From the NCBI GenBank assembly GCA_048013815.1, contig CM106586.1, forward strand, positions 3,038,001 to 3,102,000: a stretch of DNA of 64,000 nt, read 5' to 3'. Positions 1,299-58,389 of the stretch are shown piece after piece (the first letter of the stretch is position 1; the number at the start of each line of letters is the position of its first letter). The position numbers and the translations under genes are program-made. Source of the DNA: Setoptus koraiensis (taxonomy: Eukaryota > Animalia > Arthropoda). Under the pieces are notes generated by a model, which had not been told where the DNA came from, did not search any database, and was given only the letters and a program-made list of their open reading frames with translations.

Positions 1299-1904
1299 AT
1301 GACCTACGGCAGAAATAGGGTATTCATTGGCGGCCTAGAGCCGGTCATCACCAAAGAGGACATCGAGAAAGAATTTGGCAAATTCGGAAAGCTAGAAAAT
1401 GTTTGGGTGGCCCAAAATCCGCCAGGCTTTGCATTTATTGTTTACGGCGAACAACAAGACGCCGAAAATGCCGTGGACAAAATGAACGGTCAGACGTTCA
1501 TGGGCGGAAAATTGCGCGTTGAACACTCCAGGCCAAAGCCACCGGGAGCTAGAAGAGGTGGCGGCGGCTACGTCGGTGGGCCACCTAGACGCGACGGCGG
1601 CGGTGGCTACATCGGCGGAGGTGCATACAGAAACGGCCGCGGCAGCTACAATAGTACCAGCTACGGTGCCCCCCATTACGCTCGTTCACAGCCCTACGGG
1701 GGCCCAGGAGCTGGCGGTGACCGCGGTGGCGGCCGGCCAGAACGACGCGACCACGGAGACAGATCCGTGGGCGGGGGTCGCGCAAACGGAAGATACCATG
1801 ACGCAGACAGTTATGGCGATTCGAGACCTCCCAGAAGAGACGACGGCCCAAGATCTAGAGAGTACCGCTCAGGCGGTAGAAGCCCACCGAGGAGATACAG
1901 TTAA
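1299..1904 (+). CDS. Rsf1: SR-related RNA-binding protein (single RRM + Gly/RGG-rich region + short RS tail), Rsf1/SRSF3-7-like, intronless, 201 aa
   Basis: ATG-started ORF. RNP2 VFIGGL and RNP1 region VWVAQNPPGFAFI, ending GGKLRVEHSR. The NPPGFAF signature marks the SRSF3/SRSF7/Rbp1/Rsf1 group. The Gly-rich C-terminus with no zinc knuckle favours Rsf1. Family call is strong; the exact orthologue is less certain. Confidence 0.85.
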   Translation: MTYGRNRVFIGGLEPVITKEDIEKEFGKFGKLENVWVAQNPPGFAFIVYGEQQDAENAVDKMNGQTFMGGKLRVEHSRPKPPGARRGGGGYVGGPPRRDGGGGYIGGGAYRNGRGSYNSTSYGAPHYARSQPYGGPGAGGDRGGGRPERRDHGDRSVGGGRANGRYHDADSYGDSRPPRRDDGPRSREYRSGGRSPPRRYS

Positions 1905-4900: not shown

Positions 4901-5224
4901 GAAATCAATTGAGAATTGTCTAAGACAATTATTGCAAATATCGTTGTTGTCGATACGATGGTGTTGTTGTTGTTTGTGTTGTTGTGTAAAGAGTAAGTGT
5001 CGTTAAATTAAAAAGCTTCCATCCACTAGGCTCCACTTGTAATCTAAATTATGGTGCCAATTCAGTGTAATTGCATATGAGTGAACTGTTGCGAGCAACA
5101 ACCATTATAGAATTATAACTGCGATCACGACGACCAATTAGCAGTTGACAATAATAATAATGCCGTTGTAGCCTAGCTAGCTTGCTATATGTTCTTGCAT
5201 TGAACTGACCCCATGATGATTCAT

Positions 5225-11200: not shown

Positions 11201-12735
11201 CAAAGCCAAACAACTCTGCCCGCTGCCTGCTGGCCGGCGCCTTTGCCGTCTCAAGAGCGGCAATTAGACAATTGCGAGCTCGACGAGAGCCGGCGATTGT
11301 ATTAATTAGAAATGCGATCAATTTGATTGCTTGCCATGATAATGATCGAACGCATGATGATGCAATCCACTTTATATTCATCGTCGTCGCTGCACAATTA
11401 CGACAAACGCACACACACACACACACACACACTGGCAACAAACAACCGCTCCATCATAAATAATCTAGGCCAAAGCGTTTAGCTCGACCTGACACCGGCC
11501 GGTCGCGCCGCTCAATGATTGATCGCCTCGAGCGACGCGCCGCACCGCCAATCACAGCGGCCGCCGGGCCGGCAGCCGCTCGTTGTGTCACACACTAACA
11601 ACTGCGCTAAACACACACATGCACACTTGCTCACAGAAATCGGGCGCCGCTCAGGGCCGCTCGGGCCGCCCGGGCCGCCGGACCGCAATCACGAGCGAAG
11701 CCGGAGCCGCGGCCGGAGCGAGCATGAGCACCCGAGGGGCCCAGTGTCGCTGGCTACTGGTTGTACTTACAGGATGGGCACCTTCTTCTTGACGATCACG
11801 GGCTTCTCTTTGATCACTGGCACGATCTTGTGTACGGCCTTTGGTACGGGCACTGGGACGTTCTTGTAGACTGGGTAGAAGTAAGGCTTTGGTACCTGTT
11901 GCGGGCGGGAAAGAGAACAATTGCGTGCGGCACACGGGCCGGAAGCGGGCAAAAGGCGTTAGTCGATGTAGGGTAAATGTCGACACACATGTGGGTACAT
12001 ACCGACATATGTGGGCACATGTCGATATCGAGTAAGCTAGGGGGCAACGCGCAACGGCGCCAAACTTACCTTGACGGTGACTGGGTAGGGCACTGGCTTG
12101 GCAATGGGCACGATCTTGGGCACGTGGACAATGTAAGGCTTGGGCACCTTAACCATGTAAGGATGGGGCACTGGCTTTGGAACCGGAATTGGTTTGGCCA
12201 CTGGTACGTGCTTGAATACTGGGTATGGGGCGTAGACGTGCTTAATTACAGGAACAATCACGTGCTTAGGTACAAATTTTGCAATTGGCAACTTCTTAAA
12301 TACCGGATAAGGTTTCAATACTGGGTATGGCTTGTGTACTGGGTAGGCTTTCATGTAAGGAACTTCTTTAGCAATATGTTTAACAATAATCTTCACTGGC
12401 CTTGCGTATTCAGTGTGATAATGATGCTCGCCACCCTCGGCTTGATTTCCGTAACCTGATTGCATTGAAGCGGCCTGTTGGCTTCCGTAAGACGAGCCCG
12501 AATCCATTGAGGGTCCGCTAGAGGCGCCATACGAGGAGCCCGAGTCCATGGATGAGCCGTATTGGTCGCCACCTGACGACGATTGTCCGTAACCTGATGC
12601 TCCCGAATCGCTGCCACTGGAGCCGTATGGATCGGAGGCGCTGACAAAATTACATAATATGGCTACACTAAGTGATATTGTCACTAGAGTGACGATGCTC
12701 GAAGCCACATTTTTGTTATTATGTGGGCACTTCAT
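5225..12735 (-). CDS. Secreted Pro/Val/Tyr/Lys-rich low-complexity cuticular-type protein (CPLCP-like), 3 exons, about 288 aa, His-rich C-terminus
   Basis: Exons (minus): 12735-12070, 11895-11771, 5300-5225. Junctions: AAG|GTAAGT...AACAG|GTA (phase 0) and CT|GTAAGT...AACAG|T (phase 2, matches). Signal-like VTLVTISLSVAILCNFVSA, a G/S/Y-rich segment, PV/PY/K repeats, and the end VEHHYKEIKTAPAYHHHGHHESHY*. Exons 1-2 are solid. Exon 3 is inferred from phase, acceptor and composition. Confidence 0.8.
10405..10477. repeat. 15-bp minisatellite (GATCGAGAGTCGCCA) x about 5
   Basis: Read directly from the sequence. Confidence 0.9.
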
Positions 12736-12995
12736 AATTGTGTTTGTTATGAACCACGATAATTATGAATATGATGTGTGTAATTTGTACGTATATAGAA
12801 ACAATTATACAACAACTATATAACTGTGTTGCACTTGACTGCTATTGTGTATGAATAATAATAATGAATATGTGAATGAATTTGTCGATTTATAACGCTT
12901 TCAACAAATACAAATAATAATAATAATAAGACTTGTGAGTGTCTTGACGACTTGTGTGACTACTGTTAATTGTTGTGTTTCGCTGCCGGTGTCGC

Positions 12996-13040
12996 GAATG
13001 TAACTATTTTATTTTGTTCTTGTGTGTATTTAAACACTTT
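12996..13040 (-). promoter_or_regulatory. Putative core promoter of the minus-strand cuticle-type gene (TATA-like TTTAAATA + Inr-like ATAGTT, TSS about 13005)
   Basis: AAAGTGTTTAAATAC (13040-13026) and TAGTTACATTC (13006-12996) are both identical in the paralogue's upstream region. TATA-like start to Inr A is 29 nt. Confidence 0.55.
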
Positions 13041-13698
13041 TCAAACTGATGTCGCTTGATGTCGTTGTTGTCTGTCTGTCTGTTCGTCTGTTTGTTTGTT
13101 TGTTTGTTTGTTTGTCTAGCTAGCTTGGTGCCGTTATGTTATAACAGTGTCCTTATGCCCTTATGCCGTGTTGCAAGTGTGAGCTGGCCGGTGATAAACA
13201 ATCTCTATATTATCATATACTGCTTATGCAACTACAAGCTGCACTACAACTACTACTGCTGTTGCTGTTGCTGTTGCTGCTGTCACTATCGCCAGCGTTA
13301 ATACTAGCGTGTATATCTATATAATAATATTATATATATACAAACAGATAGATATAAATATATATATATATAGATTATATATATTTATACATATACACCT
13401 AGTGGCAAGCGAGAGAGGCGCACAAAGAGCGAGCGAGCGGCCGCGCACACAGAGCTACAAACAAACAATATATATATTCATATAAATATAAATATATATA
13501 ATTGATATAAATATCACTGGTTATCTGGTGGTTGGTGGTTGGTTGTTGCGCTGTCGACGGCGACAATTGATATGACACACGCTGCTTGATATGACCGTTA
13601 CGTCCAGTACAGTACACACAACAGGTCTTGTCGTTGTTGTTGTTGTTGTTGTTGTTAAATTGCTTGCGCACACTCTCTACGCAAATGATGCTGACCAA

Positions 13699-13876
13699 GA
13701 TATTCACCTGTGCCGTTGTTGTTGTTGCTGTTGTTGCTGCTGTCGTTGTTGTTGTTGTTGCTGTCGTCGTTGCTGCCGGTGCTGTTGCTGCTGTTGGCGC
13801 TGTCAGTGCTGCTCACCTGTCTATTCGCTCAGCTGGTCTCAGGATGGTCATTAATGGTGATGCTCCTGCCCACTAT
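13699..13876 (-). promoter_or_regulatory. Paralogue-conserved upstream cis-regulatory module (41-bp element + two CAGGTG blocks)
   Basis: 13836-13876 is the exact reverse complement of 29166-29206. 13807-13823 matches 29313-29329 and 13699-13712 matches 29456-29469. Confidence 0.65.
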
Positions 13877-14533
13877 ACTAAACACACACACACACACACA
13901 CACACACAAGTGACTGCTCTGGCCGGAGGAGGCGAGCAAGGTTGTACGCATTGCAACGCAAGTGAGTTCGATGTAATGGCGCCGTTCGAAATTCGAATTC
14001 CGTTTCGATTCGATCCCGTTCGAGCGGCAGTCCCGCATTCGCATTGTGATTGCCGGCCGAGCGGATCGCCGCCAGTAAATCCGATCCGATTCGAGCCGAG
14101 CCGATACGATCGGGTTGGTCGGTACGGTCGGGTCGCAGCGGAACGGCGGAACGCACCAAATCGAATCGGCAATCGGTTGGCCAGCGGACGGCGGTGTGAT
14201 TCCGTTTGGGCCGGTCAGGTCGGCGCGGTGTTGTTGTGGTAGCGAATCGGTTCGATTTGAAGCGAATCGCACGGACGAATGGAGAGTCAAACGAGATGGA
14301 GAGGAGAGAGGGAGAGAGGGGAAATCAAACAAGTTAGATCAACAAGTCAGCGGTAATTGGCCCGCGGAGCGGCTGCTTTCGCTCTCGAATTTCGCCGCTG
14401 CAAAAGCAATTTTTCTTCGGCGCGCTGTTCGAGCTGGCCGTTCGAACTTCGAACGGCCAACAATCGCGTGAACGGCAAACGTTGAGATGCCGCCGATGTC
14501 GGCAATTCAAATTGCGAATTCGCATTAAGCGAC

Positions 14534-14688
14534 TGGCGATTGGCAATTGGCAATTGGCGATTGGCAATTTGCAATTTGCAATTCACAATTCACAATTCGC
14601 AATTCACAATTCGCAATTGGCAATTGGCAATTCGCAATTCGCAGTTCACAATGAGCAATTCACAATTCGCAATTCGCAATTCGCAATT
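14534..14688. repeat. 7-bp degenerate minisatellite NNCAATT x about 22
   Basis: Units shift along the array: GGCAATT, TGCAATT, CACAATT, CGCAATT. Confidence 0.9.
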
Positions 14689-16276
14689 GTTAATGCGAAT
14701 CGCAAGTGCCGGGCAATTGCTGACAATGACCAATGTGTGTGTGTGCGTATCGGCGCAGGTCGATCAACTGACTCACCTGTCGGATGCGCGCTGGCTGTTG
14801 AGTGGCTCTGGCTTGATTGCGGTTGCCTTGATGATCAATTGATGCTGCACTTGCTGCTTCACTAATTATTATCTGTGTGTCCGACTGTGTGTCAACAATG
14901 TGAATTTATGCGAAACTCTTAATAACTTGTTAATATGTGAAAGCTTTGCTTGGTTAGTGCACTTGTTGTTGCTGTTGCTGCTGCTATCGATATGCGCGAT
15001 GCTGCTTGTTTGCGACAAATATTGCGACTGATGCCCTGGCACTGTTTGTATTTTTGAGATGGTGTTGGCGCCCACGCAATGCTGCTATGAGTGCTGCTGC
15101 TGCTGCTGTAGTGTTGACGAATGAACCAAGAGGCAAACAACAATGACAATCGCTCAGACGTCGCCGAGCCTTCTTATGTTAAAAAAAGTTCTCTGGAAAC
15201 GTTCTAGAAAAGAGAAAAGTTTCTTCGCTCATTATTCTCTCTCTCTCTCTCTGTCTCTCTGTCTGCGTACAACGGCCCACCGCTACAGCAACCGCTACAA
15301 CGGCGACATCGACAACAACAACAACAACGACAGCAACAACAACAGCAACAGCAGCGACAACAACAACGACAACAACAACCTCTGCTGCTAAGAACGCTGC
15401 AAGAAAACTGTGACGGTCCCTAGGCCAGCGCGGCTCAGGTGAGCCAAGGGTTTTTTGTTTGCTTGTTGTGCCGTAAGGGTCTGCATGCACACACTTACGG
15501 CATCATCGGTTGGTGCAGCCAGTTAGTGGCGGGCTCACCTGTCTACAAGTGTGCACCACTTAACTACAGGCTACCACAATGCATTGTGTCCCATTGTTGT
15601 GCTGCCTGTGCGGCTAACGGGCGCTGTCAGCCAGTTCAATCGGCTCCAGCACTCATGTCAGGTGAATGTTGTTGTCGCTGTTGTTGTTGTCGCTGTTGTT
15701 GTTGTTGCCGATACTTGCGGCATCCTACAGCAACTCACTCTTGACAGTGACAGTCGCGCAAGCCGACACAACAGCCAGGTGAGGCTCCATCTACTCGCAA
15801 CTTATGTAACTGTTGGCCGGCTCACCTGTCGGTGTGTGTTACCTGTCGGTGTGTGCTGCAGGGCGCGCACTACTGGCTGTGACACATTGGGCAAAACTCT
15901 CGCTTCGCTAATTGATCGCACTTGTTGCCACTGTTGCAGTTATTGTGTGTGCGTGTGTGTGTGTGTGTGTGTGCTGCATAATTATCGCCGTATCGACAAC
16001 AATCGTGCCGACAACAACATGCGATCGGCGCCATATCTGTACATATCAGCCAATCGCCGTTATCTGTCAATATCTGTCAAAATGGATATTTCATCGCTGT
16101 TTTTTTTTCACTTGCCGGTGGCGCTGTTTGACATTAGTGTCAATCACAGCTGACAATCCCAGCAGCGGCATGTTCCGTTATAACGCTGCTATGTGTCACC
16201 GTATTATTTACACATGCATTACCCACTGTTTCATTGTGTCCACCATGTTGCACACCGTCCATTGTGCACAGCCATA

Positions 16277-16399
16277 CAGCTGACTACACAGCTGACTACA
16301 CAGCTGACTACACAGCTGACTACACAGCTGACTACACAGCTGACTACACAGGTGACAGCTATACAGCTGACTATACAGGTGACATAACAGGTGACATTA
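16277..16399. repeat. 12-bp minisatellite (CAGCTGACTACA) x6 perfect + 4 variants
   Basis: Read directly from the sequence; each unit starts with an E-box. Confidence 0.95.
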
Positions 16400-17546
16400 G
16401 AGATGGCGACGATAGTGCAAATGAGGGGAGCAACTCATTTGCGTGCTGACCGTTATGTCACCGGAGCAGCTGACGTTAGCAGCTGCAATGTCGAGGCATG
16501 TTGAGCAACCCCGACAAGTGTCAACAGCGACAAGTCGACAGTGACAAGTCGACAGTGACAAGTCAATAGTGAATTGTTGAATAGTCAATTGTGACCATAT
16601 GCGCAACAGTGTCAATGGAGTGGACAGCGACAGCGATGCTGCAGTTGTGGGTCACTCTCTCATGGTGGCGCCTCCTGACGGTAAATCACAAAGCTGATTT
16701 GCACAAGCACCAATGTGACACACTCACTGTATTAGTAATACATACTGTAGCTGTATGGCCAAACAGTGTACAGTGTACGGTACCAGTATGCGGTGACCGC
16801 AAACTGGCAAACACTCTAATTAACAATATCAATCAAGCAACAATTTATTTCATTTTATTATTATTATGGGCATGATAAGCTCGTGCAAGTGTCGTCAATT
16901 ATGAGCAGTGCTTATGATTGCAGTCGGATAAAGTAGGTTAACAACACAAACAACAACAAACTAATGTAATCAATTAATTACCAGCACACAAACAAGCGCG
17001 ATAGCGGGGGCGTCGAAGGTCCGAAGGTGACACAGCCGGTTCGGCCGAACCTAACCGTTTAAGGGTGTCGCTCTATCTGTGCTGGTATCTGTTGCGTTAG
17101 TTGTCATGAGCCGTGTTGCGCAATCTCTGGTAAGTGGCAATGAAGTTGAAGTTGAAATGTTATAAAATGGGTTACGCAACAAACAGAGAGCGAGCGAGCG
17201 AGCGAGAGAGATAAATCATTGATAGATGCACAATGGGAGTGAAGATCGAGGAAGTGACCCTTGCACCGTAATTGCGTGGCCTCGCCCAAATGTACCTAAC
17301 GTAACAAAAATAATAATAATAACAATAATAATGATAATGATAATGGTAATGGTAATAGTAATAATAATAATAATAATAGTGATAATCTGTGCGAATGTGC
17401 AATAATTGTGTTTGCTCGGGCGCTCGCATTTACATCAGTTAGTTAGTTAAATTATCGGCTGGCCGCTTGATTGGCTGCTTCGAGGAGTCGGCCTGATAAC
17501 GGCACGGTTGGCCCGATAAAACGTAAGCCAGTTGGGCCGCCGATAA

Positions 17547-17602
17547 AGCCGGTTAGCCGGTTAGTTGATTAGCCGGTTAGCCGGTTAGCCGGTTAGCCGG
17601 TT
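17547..17602. repeat. 8-bp repeat (AGCCGGTT) x6
   Basis: Read directly from the sequence; one 8-bp interruption. Confidence 0.9.
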
Positions 17603-18234
17603 AGCTGACTGACTGGCTGACTTTCCGATAGATTCATATCTCGCAGATAATTACTTCCATTGCCAGACTTTTATCGGCGCGATTTAATCGTCGTGATTAA
17701 TGAGCCCTAGCAACAATTAAACATAGAGATTATTAATTTCCTTTCCTCGAGCGCCAGTTGCCCAAATAACAATTTACTTAAATAACTGTTGCCGTCACCC
17801 GCCTGTTGCTATCAAATGTCGCCGAGCCGAATGAAGAAAAGTTATTCGTTTCAAGTGAGAGCGAGAGCGAGAGCGAAATGGTAAATTAGATAGTTAGCAA
17901 AATTCAAAACGTTGCCAGCGGTTTGTGTGTGTGTGTGTGTGTGTCGAATGCTAATAACAAACAAGACAGTTTATAACGGTCGCTGGCTACTTGTTCAACT
18001 ATTGGCCATTATCATTGTCGTTGTCGTATTGTCGCTATCAGGCCAATCAACAAGACAGCTAACACGACAGCTAACCCACTGACTGGATTACCTGTCGAGC
18101 GCTGCCGACTGCCGACTGCAGATCTATCTGGAGATCCGATCAAATTGATAGTAACAAGCAAACTTTGTTGGGGGCAAACATTGACGACGTTTGACAAAGA
18201 TAACGGTCGCTCACTCGCTCGAAAATGTAACAGT

Positions 18235-18302
<68 letters not shown>

Positions 18303-18303
18303 C
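18235..18303. repeat. (AAC)n microsatellite, about 23 units
   Basis: Read directly from the sequence. Confidence 0.97.
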
Positions 18304-21300
18304 TGTGTACAATGTGTGCGCAATTTAAACATGCATATTCAATAAGATCGGCGTCGTTCCATTTCATTCATTTAAAAGCGTTTCACTTGAAATAATGCAA
18401 CCAACACGGTGACCAGGTTAAATTATGCAATCACTCTATTGATCATCATTATTTGAAGGATTGTAGTTGGCAGCAAACAGTTGCAACAACATCAACAACA
18501 ACAAAAACAGTGACCACTGTTCACCTACCGGCTACTGTCAGCCGATGGTCGTGTCGTCGAGTCCGGGCAATTAATACAAACAATTCAAGTACGTGTGTGT
18601 GTTTGTGTTGCGCAACGTGATTAGCTAACGGAACTGCGCGAAACTCTGTACCTGTCATATGATTATTGTTATTGCCGTAGTTGTTGCTGTCGTCGTTGTT
18701 GTCGTTGTCGTTATCGTTGTTATTGTTGTTGCTGCCGTTATTGTGGGTTTAATCTTGGTTTAAGGCATTGAACTATCCTGTTGGGTATCGAGAGCAACAA
18801 CAGCGATAGAACGACCGAGGAAATCGGACGATAAAAAGATTATCACGACCATAAAAAACTAATACATAAATTATTGCAGCGTCTCGCTAGTCGTAACGCC
18901 AGCCATTGCAACATATTAGATGGGCCTTGCGACAATTTTCAGCGACGGCTTTACCTGTTGCCTATCGCTTAGCGCCAATCGGGTTCAATAAGGCAACAAA
19001 AACAATTAATAATATCGCACATTCTTCCTTGTCGATCAGCCACCCACACACTCACTGTACATAATATACAGTGTCAAACTCGACGCCGGCTAATCAGTGG
19101 CTTGCTCGGCCCCCAATTCGGTTGTGCCAAAGCTAATCACACGAACAAATCATCCGTTGTCTAGCGCGGCTTCGCTGAACAGTCGGAAATTTTGTCTGTT
19201 ATCCATTGTGATTTACCGTGATTTTATCTGGCGTGATCTGTCGTGATCTGTCGTGGTCTGTCGTGATCTGGTTGGCCGTTGGTTTGCTGTTGAAGGCTGT
19301 TGAACGTTGTCGAGTGGATGTTGAACGCGTCCAACATCCACTAATCAACGCAATCGCTTCTCATTGACGACATCTCACATCTGGCTAGCGAGACTCGATA
19401 TAGATGGCGACCGTTAGATGCAGTTGCGCAACAAGGACACCCAGAACCACATTCGGCCTGAGCACATCATTTGTTGCTAATTACAATTTCGCATACATGT
19501 GTGTGTGTGTATACGAGTGTGAATTATCTAATGTTGTTATTGCAAAACCAAGAAGGAATAAAATTAAATTTATTAGTATTACAATTATAAAATTATACCC
19601 GTGAATTGTGTCACCTACGCGCACCCCAAAACCTTCATTAGCAAAAGCTTCATTAACCTTCGTTCGCAATCTTTTCGGCTATCTTGTAGTAGATGTTCAT
19701 GGCCCACAGGGGGCGTCCAGATAACGGCCAATGTCATGTCGGGTCAGGCAAACAGGACACAACTTGGTTTTTGCTCTATTTTGTCGCTTCACCGCTTAAT
19801 CTTGCTGCAATCTCGCTAAAATGTCACTGTTAAATGGCTGGCCGTTTGAATTATCCCGCTGTCGTTGTTTGTGTCTCGTATCGAGAATTAATGCGACCGT
19901 CATGACGAAAGAGAGCGAAACGAGTGAGCATAAACGACCATAAATCAAAGGGCCGAGCGGGCCGAGTTCAAGCGTACCGTAATTAGCTCAATATAGCCAG
20001 ATATATCAATAATGTTTCGATTGGCGATGTTATCTTGATTATTGAATTGATAATTGTTACGACATGCCATCCAAATCGCAAGAGGAGCGCAAAAGCCAAA
20101 ATGAGCCATTTATCTCGAATGCTCTGTTTGATAAATGATTCAGGTCGCGCGGGCGAGCATTTTATCCATCTATTTCGCGCATTTATTTCTCTGTTTATCT
20201 CTGTTTATTTCTGTTTATCTCTGTCGGTCTCTGTTGGTCTCGGTGCAAGTGTCGCCCCTCGCGCTGTTGGCGTCTCGGCGAAGAAGCCAGCCAAGGCCAG
20301 CCAAGCCAGTGCACGTATGCATATTAATGTTGCTTTATACCGGTCGCTAATGGATTCGCTGATGGCACGTAAAAGTGTCAGTGTACGCGTCTCATCTGAC
20401 GGGTGCGGGCGGCCGGCCGGCCGAGCGAGCCCGCTTTTCTGCGGGTCGGGCAACCAACTAAAACACTAATCGTCCGATAGGGCGATAGGGCGATAGTGCG
20501 ACAGGGCATGGTGGCGAAAATGTGGGCACGGATGTGAGCAAATTGATCAGCTCGCCTAATCATTATCGCTAATCACTATCGCTTACTATCACGGGCCGAG
20601 ACAATTCAATTGCGATGGCCGAAGGTGGCCGGCCCACGGCGACAGCAAAATAGATTAAAATGTAGCGCAGTGAAGTGACTCTCGCCAATGCAAATGAAAT
20701 TCAAAATTCGAGCCATTTAGCCTATTAAATCATTAGCATCATCGTGTGAGTGTTGCATCATTAGCCACAGGCGATTCACCGACTGGCGTGCTGTTATTAT
20801 TACATGTTACCTGTTATTACCTGTTAGCTGTGCATTATTAGCTGCAATGGGCATTCACCCGCGTGATTTGCTACAAATTTACCTGCAATAAAGAGATGTG
20901 TCTCAGGTACATATCGCGGGTGTGTGTAGCTGTGCCGGCGGGCCAAGGGCAACAAACGCGGGACAAATTCGCGCCATTATCAGAAATCAAATCCCTTCTC
21001 GCTGACCACTCATTAGCGGGCGCTGACCACTTGCCATTATGGGTCGCGGTGCGCGGCGATCGGCCAATTGTGGGCACTTGTTGCCCGGTGCTGCCTCGGT
21101 GACTCAACAAACGCACATAATGATGATGCCTGCTGGTCTAATGATGCCAACGACAGCGACACAACCAATTATCCGTGTCAAATTATTTATCTATTCTCTT
21201 TCGTCGACAGTCGGCCGGCCAGGCAGGCAAGCAATTGTGCGCAAACTGCCAACTTGTTTCACTGCTACACGACAAGTGTCCGGCGAGTGAGTCGCGGCGA

Positions 21301-21715
21301 GCGGCCAGAGCAAACTGCCAGAGGAATAGTCAAGTCGAGCAGTAATGATAATAATTTCATTTCTTTTCTTTTTATGCCGTTCGCTTCCTTCTTCGTGCTT
21401 CCATTTGGCAAGCCGCCGATTTGGCAAGCCGCCGATTTGGCAAATTCGGCGCTGCCAGAGACACTTTAATTAGGCACATCTTCATTAGCATTAAATTGAG
21501 CTCTCTCGAGGAGAAAGTCTGCACTCTAGAAATGCTACTACTCTGCAGGGCTAATCTATAGAGAAATCTCTATAGAGCAATAGAGAGCGACGCACGAAAG
21601 CGAAAACAAACAAGAAAAATAGGGCAAACAACAGTGATTATTATTATCGCCATCATTATAATTGTTGTGCTGCTGCTAATGATTAGTCGCTTCCTCGAAC
21701 CACTCGCCCGCTCAA

Positions 21716-21765
21716 CACTCACCTGTCCGACACTCACCTGTCCGACACTCACCTGTCCGACACTC
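21716..21765. repeat. 15-bp minisatellite (CACTCACCTGTCCGA) x3.3
   Basis: Read directly from the sequence. Confidence 0.95.
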
Positions 21766-24700
21766 GGCAGCCGGCGCCGCTATCACTGCTCGCCAACCGA
21801 AGCTTGCCAACGCGCTGGCGATAGTAGGAAGCTCGACAACAATTATCTTGCCTTTTGCAACCAATTGCAACCACCGAGACGCCAGATGATTGTTCAAGTC
21901 CAACATGGCGACACTGCTGCTGCTCTGGCCGCTGGCCGACCCTGGCCCGAAACCAATTTTCTCTTTTTAATTTGGCTGATGCTGGCCAAACAGCCATGTG
22001 ACATCATCATCGTCATGTCAACATTTCGTCATTATTTCCGCTAATTGTAACACACACACAAACACAGCGGAAATGATGATGCCGGCACAGCAAATATCTC
22101 AAATTGACACTTTTGCCACAATCGACACACTTGCCGTTGCCGCCGACGCCGGCAAACGGTGATGACGACGATCCATCCTGAATGAGAATGAGGCCCGATG
22201 AGCTCTTTTGGGGCCCGGCACATTCGCAGATTCGCCGGCATCAATCAGTTTGGTGTCATCCACTATACGCTATGTAAAGGGTCAAGAGACGCAACAGTGA
22301 TCGCCGGGCTATTCCCGATTCCGATTGGTCATCGGATTTTTCCCTCACTCACCCGAACGAAAGCCGCCCGATTCACTGAAGCGATTCATCGATGAAGCGA
22401 CAATCGGCAGCAAATCGCAAACGAGTATCACGTCGGTAGCGTCATCATCTCGCCGCCACATCACCGTCGAACAGATTCTGGACAGCACAGTCAGCAGCAG
22501 CCAGCAGCACGAGCCTGATGAGATGACTCAATGACTCGAACCATTGCTATAATTTGATAATTTCCAAGCTTAAAGTATTCAGAGAGAGATCGCTCTGACT
22601 GAATGGCCGGCGTCTCTCAATACTCAATCATTTCTGTCTGAGATTTCTGTCTGAGATTTCTGTCTGAGATTTCTGTCAACATTTCTGTCCGGTATTTCTG
22701 TCCGAATTTAAATGCGATTTTGAGCCTGAGCAACCCTGTCCACGAGCAACATGCCAAACAAATTGTGTCGTGAGTGCAAATGGAAAAATCGTGCTCAATC
22801 ATCGGATGTGGCGAGTGTATCTCTGGCTAGTATCGCATGAAGAAATCAGCAACAATTTGTTAGTAACAAATAACAAATAATGAGCCAAGCAGCAGCAGCA
22901 GCGGAGGCAAGCAGAAACTAGCCTGTTTGGCCGTGATCTGCGCGCTGGCTAATTGTTAATTAGTTGCATCGCCACCAGTGGACAGGAGATGAATTTTTGA
23001 TATTAATTTTGATTTCGAAGATGCGCCAATCAACGCAAGCGGGACACTTTGTTCGGCCTGCGACCCTGGTTTGCATTTCGTTGGGTTGTTTGCGTTGATT
23101 TAGCAAGCCCGTTTGGCAAGATGTGGCCGGCGAGCCGTTGCTAGTGAGCGCATCAGACAGTTATTGCGAGAGGGAGAGAGAGTGTGTGTTATTTAATATT
23201 AAATTCGTGCCGGATTATTATGCGGGCAACTATTTGTTTGGACGAGACTAGGAGCCGTTTGGTCGGCGAGCCAAGAATTATAGCTGAAGAATTATAACTG
23301 CGAACTGTTTGGCGTCGCCGGCCGATTATCCCGGGGCTGACACGATCAATTGCGGAATATGATTAACTCGCCACCGGCTAGCGCAACTTGGCTCGGCAGC
23401 GCCACAGACCGTGCCCAGACACTTGTTGCAGCAGTTCTCTTTCTCTGGCAAGCTAGCGTGAGCTGGCAGTTTTGTGTCGGCTCGGCTCGCCTGTGCCTCG
23501 CCGTGTGGCAAGCGAGGCATATAAATAAAACTAATCACTTTTGTTGGTTGCGTCGGAGTTGCGAGAGCGGCCGAGAGGGCGACTGAGCAACCGGGCTGAG
23601 AGCCGAGCGATTACGGCGCTCGCTAAGCTTGGGATGCCGCTCGATGCGTCATGCGGAATAAAGGAACGGAGAAGCGAGCGCCGAAGAAGCGAACGTTCGA
23701 AGAAGCGAACGTTCGAAGAGCGGACAAGCGAGCGGCCGAAGAGCGAATAAGCGAGCGCTGAAGCGAACGGCGAACGGAGCAAACGACGCAGGCATAAAGG
23801 AAGGGTTTGGCGCCGATTAGCTCGGGGGCTTCTCTCGGTGCGGCCGGCCAGCTCACCGAGAGAACAGCATCACTTTCTCGCAAGTCGGCGAATTCATTTT
23901 CATGCCAGCTCGCCGGCTCAATAGACGGCCAGCCCAATAGATGGCGAGCTCAATGGAATGAATGGGCAACAACAGCTGAATGGGCAGCGAGCGGCCGGCT
24001 GGCCAGAATGGTCAACAAGAGAGAACGAGATAAAGATGGAGCCAAAGATAAAGAGCTTGTAATCTGTGTCGAAATCATTTTTTTGCGTTGTCGGCCGCGG
24101 CAATTGCCCAATGACGCCAGTGCCAATGCTGTATACGAATGAGCGAGAGTGGGTCGACAATAAAGGAAGGATGTGAGCGCCGTGCCTCATTAATCATCGG
24201 GCGCACACACAGGCCGCCGAGCGACCGGCGATGACCAACAACAACGAAGCGTTCGCAGTCGGGTTCGCAGTTCCAGCTCGCAGCAGTCGCCTTCGAATTC
24301 GAGTTCGCAGTCGCCTTCGAATTCGAGCTCGAGCTCGAATTCGAAGTTCGAGCGCCGAGCCTCGCACTGTGAGCCTCGAATCTGCGACTCGCGAATCGCC
24401 GGCCGGCCGGCCAGCCGAGCAACAAACAACCAACGACCAACAGCGAACAACGAACAGCGAGCCGCAATCAAAGAGCGAAATTTGTTGCTGGCAACTCTCG
24501 CTAATGGCGCTGCCGCCACCGTCTAAATAGCGTCTAGCTGGCGCCTAACTGGCGCCGTCTCGGGATGACACTGCAAGTGCACCGCTCACTTCCTCTATTG
24601 CGCAACGGGCCGGGCTAATCAGCTGGCCGTTGATGCGCCCGTCGTCCGCTGGCCAACCGGCCGGCCGGCCGGTTCTGAGACTGGCCAGTACTGAGACTGG

Positions 24701-27700
24701 CCAGTTGGCTCGCAACAAGTGTCAGCGAACAATATGATTGCGGCACGATTAGCGGGCGGCGTCCGGCCGCGTCGGCGTCGGCGCTGGACGGCGGGCCGAA
24801 GCGGCCCGACGCCGATGCGGCCGTTTAAGCCGCCCATCGGCCCGATTGGCAACGCCGTCGCCACAGCTCCGACCCGGCGGAAATTTGTGGCCGCTGCGGC
24901 GTGATCGGCTCGAATCGGTTCGGCTCGCCTCGACAGCACGGCGCACAACTCCGGCTGCAACAAACGCCGATTAGCGGCTAACATTATTAGCCGGCTAATC
25001 AATGAGATAATCACGCACAGCCTTCGATGCGGCCACTCGATTGGTTCCGTCGGGTCCGGCGGCTCATTCGGTTTCTTCGGCTCCGTCGGGCCGTCGCTAT
25101 CTATATTTACTGTTACATTATGTATTATTACACACACATGAGCGCTGATGAGCGATAATAGCCCAGTGGGGAATCGCGCTGAGCGGTCCAATTATCGGTC
25201 TTTATCCGCTCATACCGGCCAGCACTAAACCGCTGGCTACACGATGGCGCCACACCGCTCCTAGGCAAGCCTGGACAAACTTAATTAAATCACCGCCTCA
25301 TTATCAATTATGATTATTATGATCAATATTCTAGAGATTTCACTGCGCTGCCCAGGCTGCAACATGAATAATTAATTATCATTTGTTAATTGCTTAATGG
25401 ACAGCGGTGGCGGCGGCGGCAACAACAACAACTTGAAACTGTTCATTAATTCATCGCAAATCGCCGCTGACCGACCCACGACGGTGCCAGCGATTCGTGA
25501 GCGCCAAACAGATGCAACAGGTGCCAATCGTCGCCACTACGACCGCTTGGCGCTCGTAATTGGCCAATTGAAAGTTTCGCCGGCCAGCATAATAATAATT
25601 AGAACGCTATAATTAGACACTCGCAAGCCAGCTCGACTTTTATATCGCGCAGAGTGTCGACTTTTATCGTTTGTATCATCATTTTAATATCATTGTCAGC
25701 TGCCATGCCGACATAAACCACAATCGGGCTATCGACGACACCAATCATCGCTTTTTATATCTATTTCATATATGATAATTGATGTCCAAAAACAGCTCCT
25801 CAGCAACAACGACGGATCACCGAGCTCACTTATATAATATAATATTATGGGCCGTATTGCAGTGTTCCAGTGTGATACAATTTTTTATTTTATCCGACCC
25901 CCACGCAGATTGTTTGCCCGTTGGCGCCTTAATGTTACCAATGAGTCGCCCAATTTAAAGAGCGCTTGCACAAATTAGTGCGCCGCCTCTTCAACCTCTA
26001 TCGCCCATGAGACAGATTATCGTCTGCAAACAGTTTCTCAATGAATAATAGTGGCCAATTTTGCTGATTTGCTAGTTGCGTAACTAGCAAATTAGCACAA
26101 TTGGCATCTCGCGATGCCAACGTGCTAAAGATTTGACGGGAAAAAAATCACATTTTCAATGTAAAATCCAATCCGAGTGCTCCATTGAATCGAGTCGATT
26201 CAATGTTTGGAAAAGTCGCAAGACGAGTTATCTAACAAGTATCTTGTAAGAGACCCAAGAGATTCTCACGTGCAGCCAGCATGAAATATCCTCTGTGGGC
26301 TGTGAGCCCGAGCAAATATAAAATAAAGCGGAGATACGATGAAGCAAAAATGAGTGATACTACGAATCTCTGCTTCAGTTTATCAATTGATCAGACACTG
26401 GACGGTGTGTCTTATCTGCATGGAAAAATTTCAATTTCTCCCTGACTCGCCCATGTAAGCTCATAATCCGATGATGATAGTTGTTGAATCAAAATGTGAT
26501 TTCAAGATTTGAATTAATATTAATTTGACGGAACACGAGTCGCTAGCAACACATGCCGGCCACAGGCAATTGATTGGGTCAGATTAAGACAGTGGTTAGT
26601 GTCATTATACTCGCTAGACCAGACTAGATTTCGGTACAATGGTTGTGACCAATGGATAGAGAGATTATTTGCATATTTCTCGACATTTCTCTCGGCAAGA
26701 GAGAGAGAGCCGTGCTCACGAAGGATTAATCTTCTGATAGCAACTGACGGAACAAACAGATTTCCACAAAATGGCTCCACTGAGCCACTGACAAGAGCGT
26801 GCTTAAATGGTTAGTTGAATGGCTAGTTGAATGGCTAGCTGAATGACTGGAAAGCGGGCCAACAGGAAACGACGGATGAGATTTATTCGTGTCAGGGCAT
26901 TTAAATGTTGCCCAAGCGGATTAGTGTCAGAGTGACAGTGTCACTTTTCATCATTTGCATATTGTCGCCGTTGTGCGCATTCGATACTCGCAATCAGATC
27001 GGACGACCTAATTCTATTTGCAACTAATTCTTTTCCGGAGACAAATCTAATCTGATCTGAAATGCACAGATTTCATTTTGCGTCACAAGTTTGTTAGTTT
27101 GGCCGACATGCCCGCTCAAAGGGCACAAACAATGAGCGTTGGCTGCCATTGAAATTTGCGACTGACACTTTTCGACAGGTAACTTTTTGGCCCGTTGGAC
27201 ATGACGTATCGACAGCATGTATCGACAGCATGTTGGCGATATATGGAAAATGTGTCAGTTTGGCGCAACAAGTTTGTTTTTGTCGCAACTTGTTGACTGT
27301 GGCGAGTGCCGATTGGCGAACTTCAAATTGCAAACAATTGTCAGCTTGCCACTGGGCGAGTCAGGCGCCGTGTCGCTGACGAACAGGTGAGAGCCGTTAA
27401 TTGATTATCTGCAGCTGGAAACGCTCGATTGGCGCAGATATTCGGCAGGCATTTGGCAGATATTCGGCAGGCATTTGGCAGATATTGGGCAGATATCGGC
27501 GGATATTGGGCGATCGAGGCAAGTGCTTCGGTGGCCACTCCACCTACAACTTTTACTTTTTTGGCCGGCCTGTTTAACTGGCAGCCAACAATGCTCACAA
27601 GTCGACGGCGGCCGGCCGACAGTTGCTATTGACAGTTGCACTTGGCTCGTTGGAGTGACGCAACTTTCTGTGGATTTTCGCTGTCGTTTTCATCGACATC

Positions 27701-29165
27701 GACATCGGCTCTCAGCGGCAAGCTCTCGAGAGTTGGCTGCAAACCGGCTGGCAGCTCAAGTTGAGCCAAAACAATGCCGAGCGCAAACAGTGCCGAGCAG
27801 GCCGAGATTTAGCTCAGCCAGTGTCTTAACTAATTGTCGCCGGTCATCATCGCCATCAGCTGGCATGCAAAAACAGTTGTACAGGTAAATAGCTCAGTGC
27901 AGCCAGCAGCATGATGCTGGCGAGCTCGCTCGATCCAGCGCGCTCGATACGCAACCCAGTGGCGCCGTTGTTGTCGGTTGTTGCTGCTGTTGCGCTGGCC
28001 AATGTTGTCGGTTGTTGATGTTGCCGTTGCCGGTTGTTGCTGTTGCCGTTGCCGGTTGTTGCTGTTGCCGTTGCCGGTTGTTGCTGTTGCCGTTGCCGGT
28101 TGTTGCCGTTGTCAATGTTGCAGTGGGTGGGTGGCGAGCTCGGCGGCAGCGGCGGCGGCGGCGCAACGGCGGGCGAGGCGAGGCTAGGCGACGACTATTA
28201 TAAGAATTATAACCAAATTATGATTATTGTTGCAGCGAACGCAGGCGAGACAACCGACCAATTCTTTCTCTCTGGCTGCAAACTTTTTGCTTATAATAGT
28301 CACTGGCTGGCTGGCCGTTGTCATCATTGTAGCGTGGGTGCCAAAACATCGTAGTTGATTGAGTTGAGTGTCTCTGCCACCACCAACGCCGCCACCACCG
28401 CACAACAACAGCAACAACGACAACAGCAACGACGACAACAGCAACGACGACAACGACTGCAACAACAACGACGACAACAACGACGCCAAACCAAGACATA
28501 CCAGTGAACGTGACGCAAAAGCCCACAGCAAGTGAGTAAACATCACAGGTAATCACAGGTGAGCGTTGGCAGCATCATCTAGTTGGTTCGCGAGCAGCGA
28601 GCGGCCAGTCGGCATATTACATCAACACAAGATACATCATCAAATTCATTCAAATAATTTATTTATTTATCCCTCTCTCACTACACACACACACTCACAC
28701 ACTCACACACACACACACACACAAACTCGCACACACACAGTTGGTTCATAGTCGGTTCATAGTCGAGATTGGATCAATCGCGCGATTACATCATCATATC
28801 ATACAAGCCACACACATACATTAGAGAGCAACAGATTGATATCGAGCAACGCTCACTCGCACTCAGGTAAGACATTATACAGTCGCACAGATATACAGAT
28901 ATAAACATAATAAAAATAAAAACATTTCAGGCTGAGCCGGCGATGATTTATCATCCGAGTAGCCGAGCTATCGGGCGCGATTAACGTCGGCCGGCCAGTT
29001 TCATTGGTGTGATGGCCAATAGACTGGCAAACACACACTCCCGTTATTAATCTGTCCAACCTTCTCGGCGGCTCGGCAGCTCGGCACCGGCTAGAGAGGC
29101 TTCGTTGTCGAGACCATAAGCTAGCCAACAGGTTGCAAGTGTGTGTGTGTGTGTCTCTTATCCAG

Positions 29166-29469
29166 ATAGTGGGCAGGAGCATCACCATTAATGACCATCC
29201 TGAGACGACCACTGCCCAGGCTAGCTCGCCTGGCAATTAAACGGCCTAGCCAGCCAACGGTTAGCCAGTTAGTGAAAAGTGAATGAGAGAGAGAGTGAGA
29301 GAGTGAAATAACTAGACAGGTGAGCAGCAAGTGAACAACGAGCCAACAGGTGAACAGTTGAATAGGTGAACAGGTGAACAGGTGAATAGGCAAACAAGTA
29401 GTGAACAGCAACAGCAAGTGAAACGACGACGACTAACAAGTAAAAGTAACGGTAACACAGGTGAATATC
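29166..29469 (+). promoter_or_regulatory. Paralogue-conserved upstream cis-regulatory module with five ACAGGTG E-boxes
   Basis: Carries the same three blocks, in the same order and gene-relative orientation as 13699-13876. ACAGGTG at 29316, 29346, 29370, 29378 and 29457. Confidence 0.65.
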
Positions 29470-29605
29470 AGTGGTCATCACAGCATCTTTTTCGCGTCCA
29501 CCAATCTCTTGACTTTCTTCTTCTTCGTCTTCTTCTTCTCCGCTTACCTGTCTCATTCTGGCTTGTATCTGACGCACGCACAAACTTGATTGTCGCCACT
29601 AACCT

Positions 29606-29659
<54 letters not shown>

Positions 29660-29689
29660 ACAATACCCAAAAAACACCCAGTGATATTG

Positions 29690-30130
29690 ATATTTATTTA
29701 TACATTATATACTAATAGTAATAGTTATACTAGCGTGTCCACTATACTTGTGTATATATTTTATACGTATATGTATATACGTGTATGTATCTGTGTGTAA
29801 ATGTCCAGTACACACATATAGGTATCTAGGCATATAGTATATATATATTTATATTATATATATTTATATAAATACATATATATATATATACATATATTAG
29901 TATAAATATATATATATATATATTTGTATAGTCACACTATACCGTTATCGCACGCATATATATAAATATATATATATCTATATACATCATTGTTATATTG
30001 CTATATACATATCTATATATACGCGTTCGTGTAGATGCACTGATATATGCGCATTACCATTGACTAACCAAATCTAATAGCACTACCACTTATTATATTA
30101 TTATCTTTATTACTAATATTATTACTATTA
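29690..30130. repeat. AT-rich (TA)n-like low-complexity block upstream of the plus-strand cuticle-type gene
   Basis: Interrupted TA dinucleotide runs. A smaller equivalent lies at about 13300-13510, upstream of the paralogue. Confidence 0.85.
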
Positions 30131-30274
30131 TTGTTATGCAACAACAACAACAACAACTACTGCTACTTCGAAACGGCACGACACGACACGACCGACTCAA
30201 CAACATCAAACTAGCACCAGCCACAGCAAGCGTCATTGACAAGCAAGCAACAACGGCAGCAAGTTGTCGCGTTG

Positions 30275-30320
30275 AAAGTGTTTAAATACTTACATAAGAC
30301 AAAACAAATTAGTTACATTC
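30275..30320 (+). promoter_or_regulatory. Putative core promoter of the plus-strand cuticle-type gene (TTTAAATA + Inr-like TTAGTT, TSS about 30311)
   Basis: AAAGTGTTTAAATAC at 30275-30289 and TAGTTACATTC at 30310-30320 are shared with the paralogue. TATA-like start to Inr A is 30 nt. Confidence 0.55.
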
Positions 30321-30480
30321 ACGTCGTCAACGATAAACAACGTCGTCGCTAATTACTATTATATAGTAATATAGTAACACAGTATAATAATAACAATAAT
30401 TATATAACAACTCACTCAATTTAACTCACAAACAGACCACAATTTTACCATTTCACATTTACCACAGACGTACACACAAA

Positions 30481-32079
30481 ATGAAGTCCTTTATTGTCAC
30501 ATTAGTGACCATATCAGTTAGTGTTGCTATATTATGTAATTTCGTCAGCGCCAACGATCCCTACGGCTCTAGTGGCGGCGATTCGGGAGCCTCCGCTTAC
30601 GGTGCACAATCGTCAGGCGGCGAACAATATGGTTCGTCGGCGGGCGCATCGGGCGCCTACGGCAAATACTATGAGCCGCCCGTGGTAAAAGTCATCCATA
30701 AGACAGTACATATTCCAAAAGCTATTCCAACGCCAAAATACATACCAGTGCCCAAAATAATACCTGTACCAAAGACTGTGGCCGTGCCTCACCCGGTCCA
30801 TATTCCCGTCAAGGTACCCATCTATAAGCCAGTGAAGAAATACATTCCAGTGGCCAAGACAATACCGGTTCCAAAGCCAATACCCATTGCAAAACCATAC
30901 CCAGTTCAGGTGCCCGTGCCCGTAATTAAGCATCAGCCCGTGCCAGTTTACAAGCAAGTGGCCGTAGCTAAACCATACGGAGTGCCCGTCCCATACAAGG
31001 TCTACAAAGACCATCCGGTGCCTTACCCAAAAATTGTCCATGTTCCAAGACCGTACCCACAGCCATACAACGTACCAGTCTACAAGGAGATAGTTGTCAA
31101 AAAGCCCGTCGAAGTTCCTGTACCGTAAGTATTTAGTAGCGGTTTGTCGGACAATTTTGTCGGAAGTTTGCAAAAAGTTATCCAAACTTATCGCCGAGAT
31201 ATGACAAATATCGCGCCGGATATTTGTCGTAGACGATATTCATACATGAACATGAAATATATGAACGTGAAATATGTGAACATGAAATCAATATTCATGT
31301 GGCCGATCGAATGGCCGCTAGATGGCCGTTGGTGCCCATGTCGCACCGATCGTCCGCTACAACGTAGGCCAACAATCGGCTGTGACCCAGGTTACATAAC
31401 GGCAAACAGCAACGGTAGCGGTAGCAGCGTAATAGTAATGATAATGTCGTTGTCTCATTATGTTGTCTCTCGACAAACCAATGAATGGAGCCAATGAACT
31501 CGTCACTGTTGCCGCAACCTGTTGCTGATAATTATCGGTCTGTTTGAATGTTTGCCACCCGCCGGCGACCAAACAACTGCCAACAACTGCCAACTGCATA
31601 CAATAACTATAACCATAATAACTAATCAATCACTGTGTATTTATATTTATTTATCGTTTATTGTTACCGTGTAACGGAACAGTATCTACATTAAAAAGAA
31701 GCCAGTCTACCATCCACCAGCATACAAGACAGAATACAAGCCAGCTTACGGACACGAATCGAGCAGCTACGCCGGAAGCGGAGGTGACTACGCCAAAGGT
31801 AACTAACGCGACAAATTAAATATCTCATAATCATTATCCGCCTTCGAATGCAGCTGATCGCTGTGACTGGCCATTCTGTCGATATTTACGCACCATATTC
31901 ATGTATTTATGTATTATAATTTTTGCATTTTTGCAGCCGCCGCCAGCAACCAGGTCGTTCAAGCTGTCCAGCACCCAGCTCTAGCCAACGGACAACAACA
32001 ACAACAGGCTGAGGCCAGCAACAAACAACAAGTGGCTGTCGCTGCACCAACTCAACAACAACAACAACAAAAGAGTTGA
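30481..32079 (+). CDS. Secreted Pro/Val/Tyr/Lys-rich low-complexity cuticular-type protein (CPLCP-like), 3 exons, about 300 aa, Gln/Ala-rich C-terminus
   Basis: Exons 30481-31124, 31683-31798 and 31937-32079, all with canonical GT-AG junctions in matching phases (2, then 1). Reads MKSFIVTLVTISVSVAILCNFVSANDPYGSS...KKPVEVPVP|IYIKKKPVYHPPAYKTEYKPAYGHESSSY...AK|AAASNQ...QQQQKS*. The N-terminus is nearly identical to the minus-strand paralogue. Confidence 0.88.
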
Positions 32080-55270: not shown

Positions 55271-55618
55271 CTTTTGTTTCGCTCACGCGTGCCTGCTTGT
55301 GTAGTATTGAGTGATATAGGGGACACAACAACTAAACAGCTTGTTATGTTAGTGACTATAATATCCTTGGTTCTTCTTGTATATATTTTATAAATAATTA
55401 TGTTAACTAAATAATTATAAATGACACAATGTAATCTGAGAATAAATATACAATCTGAAAAGCACCGATGTACTCTTGTTGCCGATCAGCTGCAGACCAA
55501 AATAAACGACGATCGGCTCACGTTGTTTTCAGCATCGGTCGCTTGGGCGCTGCAGTGCGGCGACCATGCCACAACGATGCTTGTAGTGGACAAAAGTTGA
55601 CATCATGTTGTGTCTACC

Positions 55619-57775: not shown

Positions 57776-58389
57776 CCTAATCAGATCATGCCATGTGAGT
57801 GAGATGCATAATCGAGAAAACGTGGGATAGATTGCACATGTTTTCAATACATCGATGTTTTTGAGCTCACTTATGAGGCGCCAAACTCAAATCGACCAGG
57901 CACTTCAGTTGTACTCCCACACGCTCCTGCTGGCTCCCATCGGGAGGGGGAACGAGCTGGTGCAAGGGACGAATTTTATTAACTGGAAGCCATTATCGTA
58001 GCGCCTACTGGCAGCGCGCACACAATGCCGGTCACAATGCCATTAGCGGGTGCACGCCCTCTGGTAAAATGATTCCATAGAACAATAGCTGGGTATCGGG
58101 TGTCCACATGAAATACCCCAACTACGGACAACAAAAAGTGGGCGACAAACTAGTGTAAAAAATTAAGTACGTGCACCACTTGAGCATGCGAACCTGTCCT
58201 AATGAAGAGCCCGCATTCTCATTGTTCATTATCTCTCCGCGTCTAATCCAACCCCATCTAATCTAATCTCAACCCATTTGACACGATTAGATCCCATCTT
58301 TTATTTACTTACGAATTATAAATCACCGTTAATGACAAACCAATCAGCCAGTAAAAATAAAATAATATTTTAGCACACACACACTCACA

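Follow-up and report, generated by a model that had tools for sequence, protein, structure and literature searches.

The window analysed here is a stretch of 64,000 nucleotides (nt) from the genome of the eriophyoid mite Setoptus koraiensis (assembly GCA_048013815.1, contig CM106586.1, positions 3,038,001 to 3,102,000 of the forward strand). It contains two genes arranged head to head, A on the minus and B on the plus strand, which encode proteins rich in proline-valine (PV) and proline-tyrosine (PY) pairs and in lysine, and upstream of each gene lies the same non-coding sequence of 41 nt, followed toward the gene by a series of short islands that both genes share in the same order. We favour, with moderate confidence, an account in which the pair itself is old, a 5′ module comprising the upstream region and the beginning of the coding sequence was converted between the two paralogues at a later time, and the islands are regulatory sequences that have been held under constraint since then. 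An earlier sequence-only reading of this DNA had described an inverted gene duplication that kept a colinear cis-regulatory blueprint; the geometry that it described is found again here, but the islands probably have a younger history than the duplication.

A perfect 41-mer in a colinear series of islands

The start codons of A and B are 17,746 bp apart, in agreement with the distance of about 17.7 kb given by the sequence-only reading, and the four non-coding blocks that it had listed were all recovered in their places, in the same order and in the same orientation relative to the genes (Table 1). The two copies of the 41-mer are identical at 41 of 41 positions and a (GT)n tract precedes both, again as described, while the bases on both sides of the 41-mer differ. 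The gap that separates it from the (GT)n measures 6 nt in one copy and 11 nt in the other, with different bases, and beyond the (GT)n the alignment of A against B is at the random level (45%). Block 2 follows the 41-mer after 12 nt in A as against 106 nt in B, and in block 3 a gap of 1 or 2 nt separates the 14-mer from the hexamer TGGTCA that follows it. The inter-block DNA aligns with many gaps and at 44–55% identity, which is likewise the random level and bears out its description as unalignable microsatellite DNA: these spacers are full of (CAA/CAG)n, (TA)n, (CA)n and, in B, of a (AACAGGTG)x5.8 array, to which three of the five CAGGTG boxes of B belong.

We used 206 real 1.4-kb segments of the same genome as controls for the length and order of the shared sequences. 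The longest non-simple exact match was 41 nt in the observed pair and at most 19 nt in the controls, and the best colinear chain scored 131 as compared with at most 56, so that the colinearity stands, and can be extended by a sixth colinear island, CCAGTGATATT. Taken singly, the 17-mer of block 2 and the 14-mer of block 3 are within chance, since matches of such lengths are reached by 1–2% and 4–11% of the controls, respectively, and their signal therefore lies in order and spacing. The 41-mer had no match in 100 shuffles of the window.

Across the genome searched (48.76 Mb, two contigs), the 41-mer with up to three mismatches, and also a 76-nt query around it, occurred at just these two sites, and not at the many unrelated loci that the sequence-only reading had expected of a fragment of a miniature inverted-repeat transposable element (MITE) or a short interspersed nuclear element (SINE). 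Sub-motifs of 14–15 nt, with one mismatch allowed, had 1–8 occurrences elsewhere as compared with 1–3 for reversed controls. With two copies in the genome and sub-motifs at about the frequency of reversed controls, a dispersed repeat of the MITE or SINE type can be rejected. The two 41-mers are not the termini of a 15.4-kb transposon either, because the bases outside them differ and the homology runs outward into both genes. A structured RNA, microRNA (miRNA) or tRNA-like element was rejected as well, as no Rfam family matched any of the blocks at E-values up to 1 and folding of the blocks on both strands gave results no better than shuffles (z between −0.33 and +1.77). Finally, a coding micro-exon is rejected since the reading frame through the 41-mer is not common to the two copies beyond its ends; it is further disfavoured by the perfect identity of an element that lies near real coding sequence of only 79% identity.

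An old gene pair with a probably younger 5′ module

A metagenome scan with protein B as query yielded 24 loci of relatives. One of them, L008, comes from a 134-kb metagenome contig of another mite and carries an A orthologue (4145–5176, minus strand) and a B orthologue (9986–10546, plus strand) head to head and 4.8 kb apart; L013 contains another B orthologue, and L010 and L011 contain orthologues of a third paralogue, C. In the PV domain, amino-acid identity is 88% between window A and L008 A and 90% between window B and L008 B, whereas A and B of the window share just 57%. The tree of this domain accordingly joins window A with L008 A (100/100) and places window B, the pair of L008 B and L013 B, and the C-type genes, including the pair of window-species C and L010 C, in one clade (100/100) apart from A. 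Since both paralogues lie head to head in L008, the duplication predates the species split, and the orthologies show the inverted pair A/B to be older than the separation of the window species from the L008/L013 species.

The 5′ module appears to have a history discordant with the rest of the gene, which groups by orthology; the identities show this and the trees suggest it. The N-termini of window A and B are 84% identical in amino acids (79% in nucleotides), while the same region shows 40% between window A and L008 A, 32% between window B and L008 B, 48% between window B and L013 B, and 27% between L008 A and L008 B. In the N-terminal tree window A and B are sisters (89/79), with tips of about 0.1 as opposed to branches of more than 1.7 to the orthologues. 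Detectable homology extends from 13903 down to 12534 in A and from 29139 to 30658 in B. Because the N-termini of the two window genes are far more alike than orthologous N-termini, this module of about 1.4–1.5 kb was most likely homogenised later, in the lineage of the window species, and not kept from the duplication. The process would have been gene conversion between the inverted copies, and the (GT)n that borders the homology distally in both copies fits the boundary of a conversion tract.

It is in this respect that the sequence-only reading is not supported: L008 has both paralogues, yet its A and B upstream regions share no blocks, (GA)n being the only sequence that they have in common, and the blocks of the window were not found in L008 or L013, even with 10 substitutions allowed in the 41-mer. 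Footprinting of the L008 against the L013 B promoter revealed no colinear islands. Silent sites between the window and L008/L013 are saturated, so that the absence of the blocks there says little either way. The search in related mites that had been proposed gave no support in other loci: the 41-mer was not found in the 24 related metagenome loci, orthologous upstream regions included, and its core had no match in collections of metagenome contigs and genome contigs.

A sole cross-species non-coding match concerns a 27-mer (window 29246–29272, L008 9125–9151, TAGCCAGCCAA.GGTTAGCCAGTTAG-like) with 24 of 27 positions identical, which lies 40 nt after the B 41-mer and about 835 nt before the L008 B gene in the opposite orientation. 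It may be semi-low-complexity sequence, as GCYAGCC-type words recur in both spacers.

Gene C (G000:C1:15529370-15529837; L006 5368–7023, minus strand) is located on the other contig of the genome, and its orthologues in L010 and L011 are 91% identical. Its PV domain, encoded in an exon behind an intron and without a leader of the A/B type, is closer to B (78% amino-acid and 73% nucleotide identity) than A is to B. C was considered as a third sharer of the blocks and rejected, as it has only the PV domain in common with B and none of the blocks.

Probable constraint on the 41-mer

For the time elapsed since the copying, the shared coding module provides an internal measure. Only 12 of its 26 fourfold-degenerate sites are identical between window A and B (0.41–0.61 between species), and its longest perfect run is 14 nt in spite of the 84% amino-acid identity; the 5′ untranslated regions (UTRs) of the two genes align at 45% identity. 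If about 46% of free sites stay identical, then a match of 41 out of 41 needs at least about 90% of the positions to be constrained. The 41-mer is therefore not evolving neutrally, as judged from the fourfold sites and from a coding run of 14 nt next to a non-coding one of 41, and purifying selection in both copies appears to be the better explanation. This sustains one part of the argument made by the sequence-only reading, namely that perfect non-coding identity points to selection; the other part, which took the strongly diverged coding repeats as the standard, has to be replaced, since the proper baseline is the 5′ module with its 79% nucleotide identity and not the PV repeats.

In the sequence of events that we propose, A and B would be an old head-to-head pair of genes for secreted, PV/PY/K-rich, CPLCP-like proteins. 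After the split from the L008/L013 species, a single module of about 1.4–1.5 kb would have been copied between the paralogues, probably by non-allelic gene conversion between the inverted copies. It would have reached from the (GT)n and the 41-mer (1.1–1.3 kb upstream) through the promoter and the 5′UTR to the first 50–55 codons, that is, over the signal peptide and the first Gly/Ser/Tyr repeats. Silent and non-functional positions would then have diverged almost to saturation, with microsatellites overgrowing the spacers, while six colinear islands were retained by purifying selection. The proximal island is probably the core promoter, and the distal ones, the 41-mer foremost, are probably bound by factors as parts of an upstream regulatory module, which would give A and B the same expression.

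Several observations weigh against this account. An approximately unbiased (AU) test on 58 columns did not reject a grouping of the N-termini by orthology (p = 0.095). The B promoters of L008 and L013 keep no islands at a similar silent-site divergence, which makes the six found here unusually many, and the upstream similarity could be younger than the coding part suggests. Moreover, the islands are absent in the only other species available (L008/L013), where, however, silent-site saturation makes their absence weakly informative. Lastly, 41 consecutive invariant positions exceed a typical cluster of degenerate binding sites.

A bolder version, possible rather than probable in our judgement, would see in the 41-mer a lineage-specific "ultraconserved" element that arose or became fixed after the module had been copied, with practically all of its 41 positions constrained, more tightly than the adjacent sequence coding for the signal peptide. 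If this were true, constraint on every position would speak against loosely clustered binding sites and for another kind of element, for example a rigid composite site for several proteins, an element that works only as a pair of inverted copies, such as in a promoter-promoter contact over the 15-kb spacer, or a leader that is transcribed and acts at the RNA level.

Probable core promoter and upstream module, and the competing explanations

The block closest to the genes is a likely core promoter, which is a reasonable inference. The proximal blocks of A and B form an alignment of 111 nt with 73% identity (E 7e-11) and were not found elsewhere in the genome. They contain two exact sub-blocks, a 15-mer (13026–13040 in A, 30275–30289 in B) and an 11-mer (12996–13006, 30310–30320), which are 19 or 20 nt apart, so that their spacing is kept to 1 nt. 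The TATA-like TTTAAATA lies at 13027–13034 and 30281–30288, and the initiator (Inr)-like TAGTTACATTC begins about 28 nt past the first T of the TATA-like box; the TATA-to-Inr spacing noted by the sequence-only reading is thereby confirmed at the level of sequence. TATA-like boxes are also present shortly upstream of the ATGs of orthologues in relatives.

The distal islands are most likely an upstream regulatory module of A and B. An enhancer joined to a TATA/Inr-like core promoter is a plausible function for the ensemble, and the islands would bring about shared expression of the two genes. Labels such as homeodomain, nuclear-receptor and Snail/ZEB factors, which the sequence-only reading had attached to them, are guesses from words of 5–8 nt.

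The sequences of blocks 2 and 3 are just as compatible with 5′ splice donors, and this leads to a different and serious, though in our estimation unlikely, explanation of the 41-mer. It would form part, or the beginning, of a short non-coding leader exon, with block 2 as the donor at the end of this exon, block 3 as an alternative donor and an acceptor shortly before the ATG, and the constraint would act on the transcription start site and core promoter or on the RNA leader rather than on an enhancer. Both blocks (ACAG/GTGAGC and CAG/GTGAAT) indeed carry the donor consensus CAG/GTRA in sense orientation in each gene, and the spacing of 41-mer and block 2 (12 and 106 nt) is free, as expected of the body of a non-coding exon. 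Furthermore, both genes have canonical introns (GTAAGT donors), a T-rich tract followed by AG precedes both ATGs, the 5′UTRs of several transcript-like contigs from relatives measure 330–410 nt, and 41 invariant positions would be easier to reconcile with an element that is transcribed or belongs to a core promoter than with degenerate sites. However, the proximal block already offers a TATA- and an Inr-like element at a sensible distance from the ATG, the verified donors of A and B are GTAAGT or GTAACT rather than GTGAGC or GTGAAT, folding detected no RNA structure, and the A–B alignment shows no candidate acceptor that the two copies have in common.

A second alternative dispenses with function and takes the 41-mer, and perhaps other islands, to be identical through youth, as the product of recent or recurrent micro-conversion. 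(GT)n tracts are associated with recombination and conversion boundaries, and one adjoins the 41-mer in both copies; in addition, the 5′ module as a whole bears the marks of past conversion between A and B, and the L008 and L013 promoters are without islands at comparable divergence. We nevertheless regard this as improbable. Micro-conversion requires flanking homology, and the flanks are at the random level (12–55%); the gap between (GT)n and 41-mer differs (6 as against 11 nt), so that one tract cannot span both; the coding part, with its 79% identity the best substrate, is nowhere perfectly identical over more than 14 nt; and six sharply bounded colinear patches would take six independent events.

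Least probable is the history proposed by the sequence-only reading, in which the blueprint dates from the inverted duplication and the L008/L013 lineage lost the blocks and remodelled the N-terminus of B: the B orthologues do keep a short linker rich in Gly, Ser and Tyr (CANEYGSSSGSASS in L013), which is faintly like the window N-terminus, and the outgroup is one lineage only, but the N-terminus evolves so fast between orthologues (40% identity for A) that the 84% between A and B of the window cannot predate the species split, A and B share no more than 57% identity in the PV domain, and the upstream region of L008 A also has no blocks, so that a loss at both genes would be needed.

Gene structure and products

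Exon 1 of gene A ends at an AAG/GTAAGT donor (12070/12069), as seen by inspection of donor and frame, and the apparent stop of gene B falls within a CC/GTAAGT donor (31124/31125). The peptide across the junction of B is the continuous frame of six transcript-like contigs (L014, L015, L017, L021, L025 and L029). The spliced models of A and B were checked for the local frame of the junction codon.

Each of the two proteins begins with a hydrophobic leader, as seen in the translation, which is followed by a Gly/Ser/Tyr-rich stretch and then by the PV/PY/K-rich domain. Protein B has 18 PV and 7 PY pairs in 215 amino acids and protein A has 11 PV and 8 PY pairs in 232; proline accounts for 13–19%, valine for 13–19% and lysine for 9–11% of the residues. 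No Pfam model matched either protein, and their relatives are unnamed arthropod proline-rich proteins and "hypothetical protein" entries of ticks. Low-complexity, proline-rich cuticular proteins (CPLCP) are defined by their densely packed PV and PY pairs (PMC12105342), a criterion that goes back to Cornman and Willis, as cited in PMC12426002. By composition alone, A and B fit secreted, CPLCP-like (cuticle-type) proteins: they share the N-terminal hydrophobic leader and the dense PV/PY pairs, and neighbouring CPLCP-like paralogues occur in a dust mite too (PMC12105342). They differ in that their assignment is compositional, with Pfam silent and the named relatives from ticks listed only as "hypothetical protein".

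Among the relatives, L012 and L014–L031 comprise many contigs of 1.2–2.4 kb with uninterrupted, spliced-form frames of the same protein family, including signal peptides and, at the C-terminus, Gln-rich tails. These contigs are evidently complementary DNAs from metatranscriptomes of diverse mites, and the family is widely and probably highly expressed.

Table 1. Coordinates of the features of the A/B locus, given as positions in the window; a slash within a motif marks the donor or donor-like junction
Feature	Position	Strand	Remarks
41-mer, A copy	13836..13876	-	1,101-1,141 nt before ATG of A; exact match to B copy
41-mer, B copy	29166..29206	+	1,275-1,315 nt before ATG of B
(GT/AC)13 microsatellite	13880..13908	.	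just distal to A 41-mer; distal edge of detectable homology
(GT)8	29139..29154	.	just distal to B 41-mer; distal edge of detectable homology
Block 2 (17-mer, ACAG/GTGAGC), A copy	13807..13823	-	E-box or 5′ splice-donor-like
Block 2, B copy	29313..29329	+	exact match
Block 3 (14-mer 13699-13712, CAG/GTGAAT, then TGGTCA), A copy	13692..13712	-	
Block 3 (14-mer 29456-29469, then TGGTCA), B copy	29456..29477	+	
(AACAGGTG)x5.8 tandem array	29345..29390	+	between blocks 2 and 3 of B
Sixth island CCAGTGATATT, A copy	13510..13520	-	785 nt before ATG; not in the sequence-only reading
Sixth island CCAGTGATATT, B copy	29678..29688	+	803 nt before ATG
Proximal block of A	12972..13080	-	TATA-like TTTAAATA and Inr-like TAGTTACATTC; ~270 nt before ATG
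Proximal block of B	30238..30341	+	candidate core promoter ~170 nt before ATG
Coding part of homogenised module, A	12534..12696	-	79% nucleotide identity with 30493-30658
Coding part of homogenised module, B	30493..30658	+	84% amino-acid identity with A part
Gene A exon 1	12070..12735	-	open reading frame; ATG at 12735; leader, Gly/Ser/Tyr-rich and PV/PY-rich domain
Gene A predicted exon 2	11771..11895	-	PV-rich, in frame, between AG and GTAAGT; sequence prediction
Gene B exon 1	30481..31124	+	open reading frame; ATG at 30481
Gene B exon 2	31683..31798	+	reads IYIKKKPVYHPP...

Spacer and surroundings of the gene pair

The genes are 17.7 kb apart in the window as opposed to 4.8 kb in the L008 species. 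The spacer (13904–29138) contains arrays such as (ATTCGCA)x21 at 14539–14688 and (AAC)x23 at 18235–18303, and no long open reading frame (ORF) or transposon-like repeat was found in it. Its matches elsewhere in the genome are microsatellites only, for which reason transposon content was rejected as the source of its enlargement. Sub-threshold Rfam matches of miRNA type (mir-1277, mir-297, mir-466, mir-5366) were recorded at 29742–30033 and 26049–26110, some of them on both strands; these weak matches fall on (TA)n and other simple repeats, and those at 29742–30033, where the sequence is rich in (TA)n, are probably noise.

Farther away in the window, a Pfam-confirmed UCH-L5 deubiquitinase is encoded at 54365–55270 (minus strand), whose best named relative, with 72% identity, is from the eriophyoid mite Fragariocoptes setiger (other named taxa at most 62%). 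Other flanking ORFs, at 48156–50192 (minus), 55610–56716 (plus), 56759–57847 (minus) and 1299–1904 (plus), were assessed by translation alone and resemble an ABC half-transporter exon, a trypsin-like serine protease, a short-chain dehydrogenase and an RRM/RGG protein, all putative. None of the window's proteins turned up in the protein collection searched, which suggests that an annotation has not been deposited. The published reads of the genome come from a pool of at least 100,000 wild individuals, with a heterozygosity of about 1.1% (PMC11920263).

Significance and comparison with known systems

Eriophyoid mites are plant parasites of economic importance whose genomes are tiny and evolve fast; functional genomics is scant for them, and we know of no cis-regulatory elements defined in this group. 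The locus described here gives a small number of candidate elements with sharp limits, shared by two highly similar promoters and obtained without cross-species alignment, and would be a clear case of partial concerted evolution in which promoter and signal peptide moved together. It also holds a caution for footprinting within a genome: the similarity of paralogous promoters may stem from a later conversion, and since it may thus postdate the duplication, the converted tract itself, rather than the remainder of the gene, has to supply the neutral baseline.

Concerted evolution by partial gene conversion of inverted or tandem paralogues that includes the promoter is known from the divergently oriented hsp70Aa/Ab pair of Drosophila, and in the human G-gamma and A-gamma globin genes a converted tract ends at a (TG)n run. 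A and B resemble these systems in being more alike than orthologues over a bounded stretch of 5′ flank and coding start, while the rest of the genes groups by orthology, and in the (GT)n at the edge of the homology. They differ in the age of the event, which is old enough for silent sites to be near saturation, so that short islands are seen instead of a long, near-identical tract; moreover, conversion at A and B is deduced from identities and trees alone. As in phylogenetic and paralogous footprinting, the islands are colinear and sharply bounded, roughly keep their distance from the ATG and include a proximal TATA/Inr-like block. They depart from the usual result of such analyses in that they were not found in L008 and L013, and the 41-nt island is longer and stricter than usual clusters of binding sites. 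The locus thus adds a case from a poorly studied group to two known phenomena, the partial concerted evolution of paralogues and the conservation of islands in promoters.

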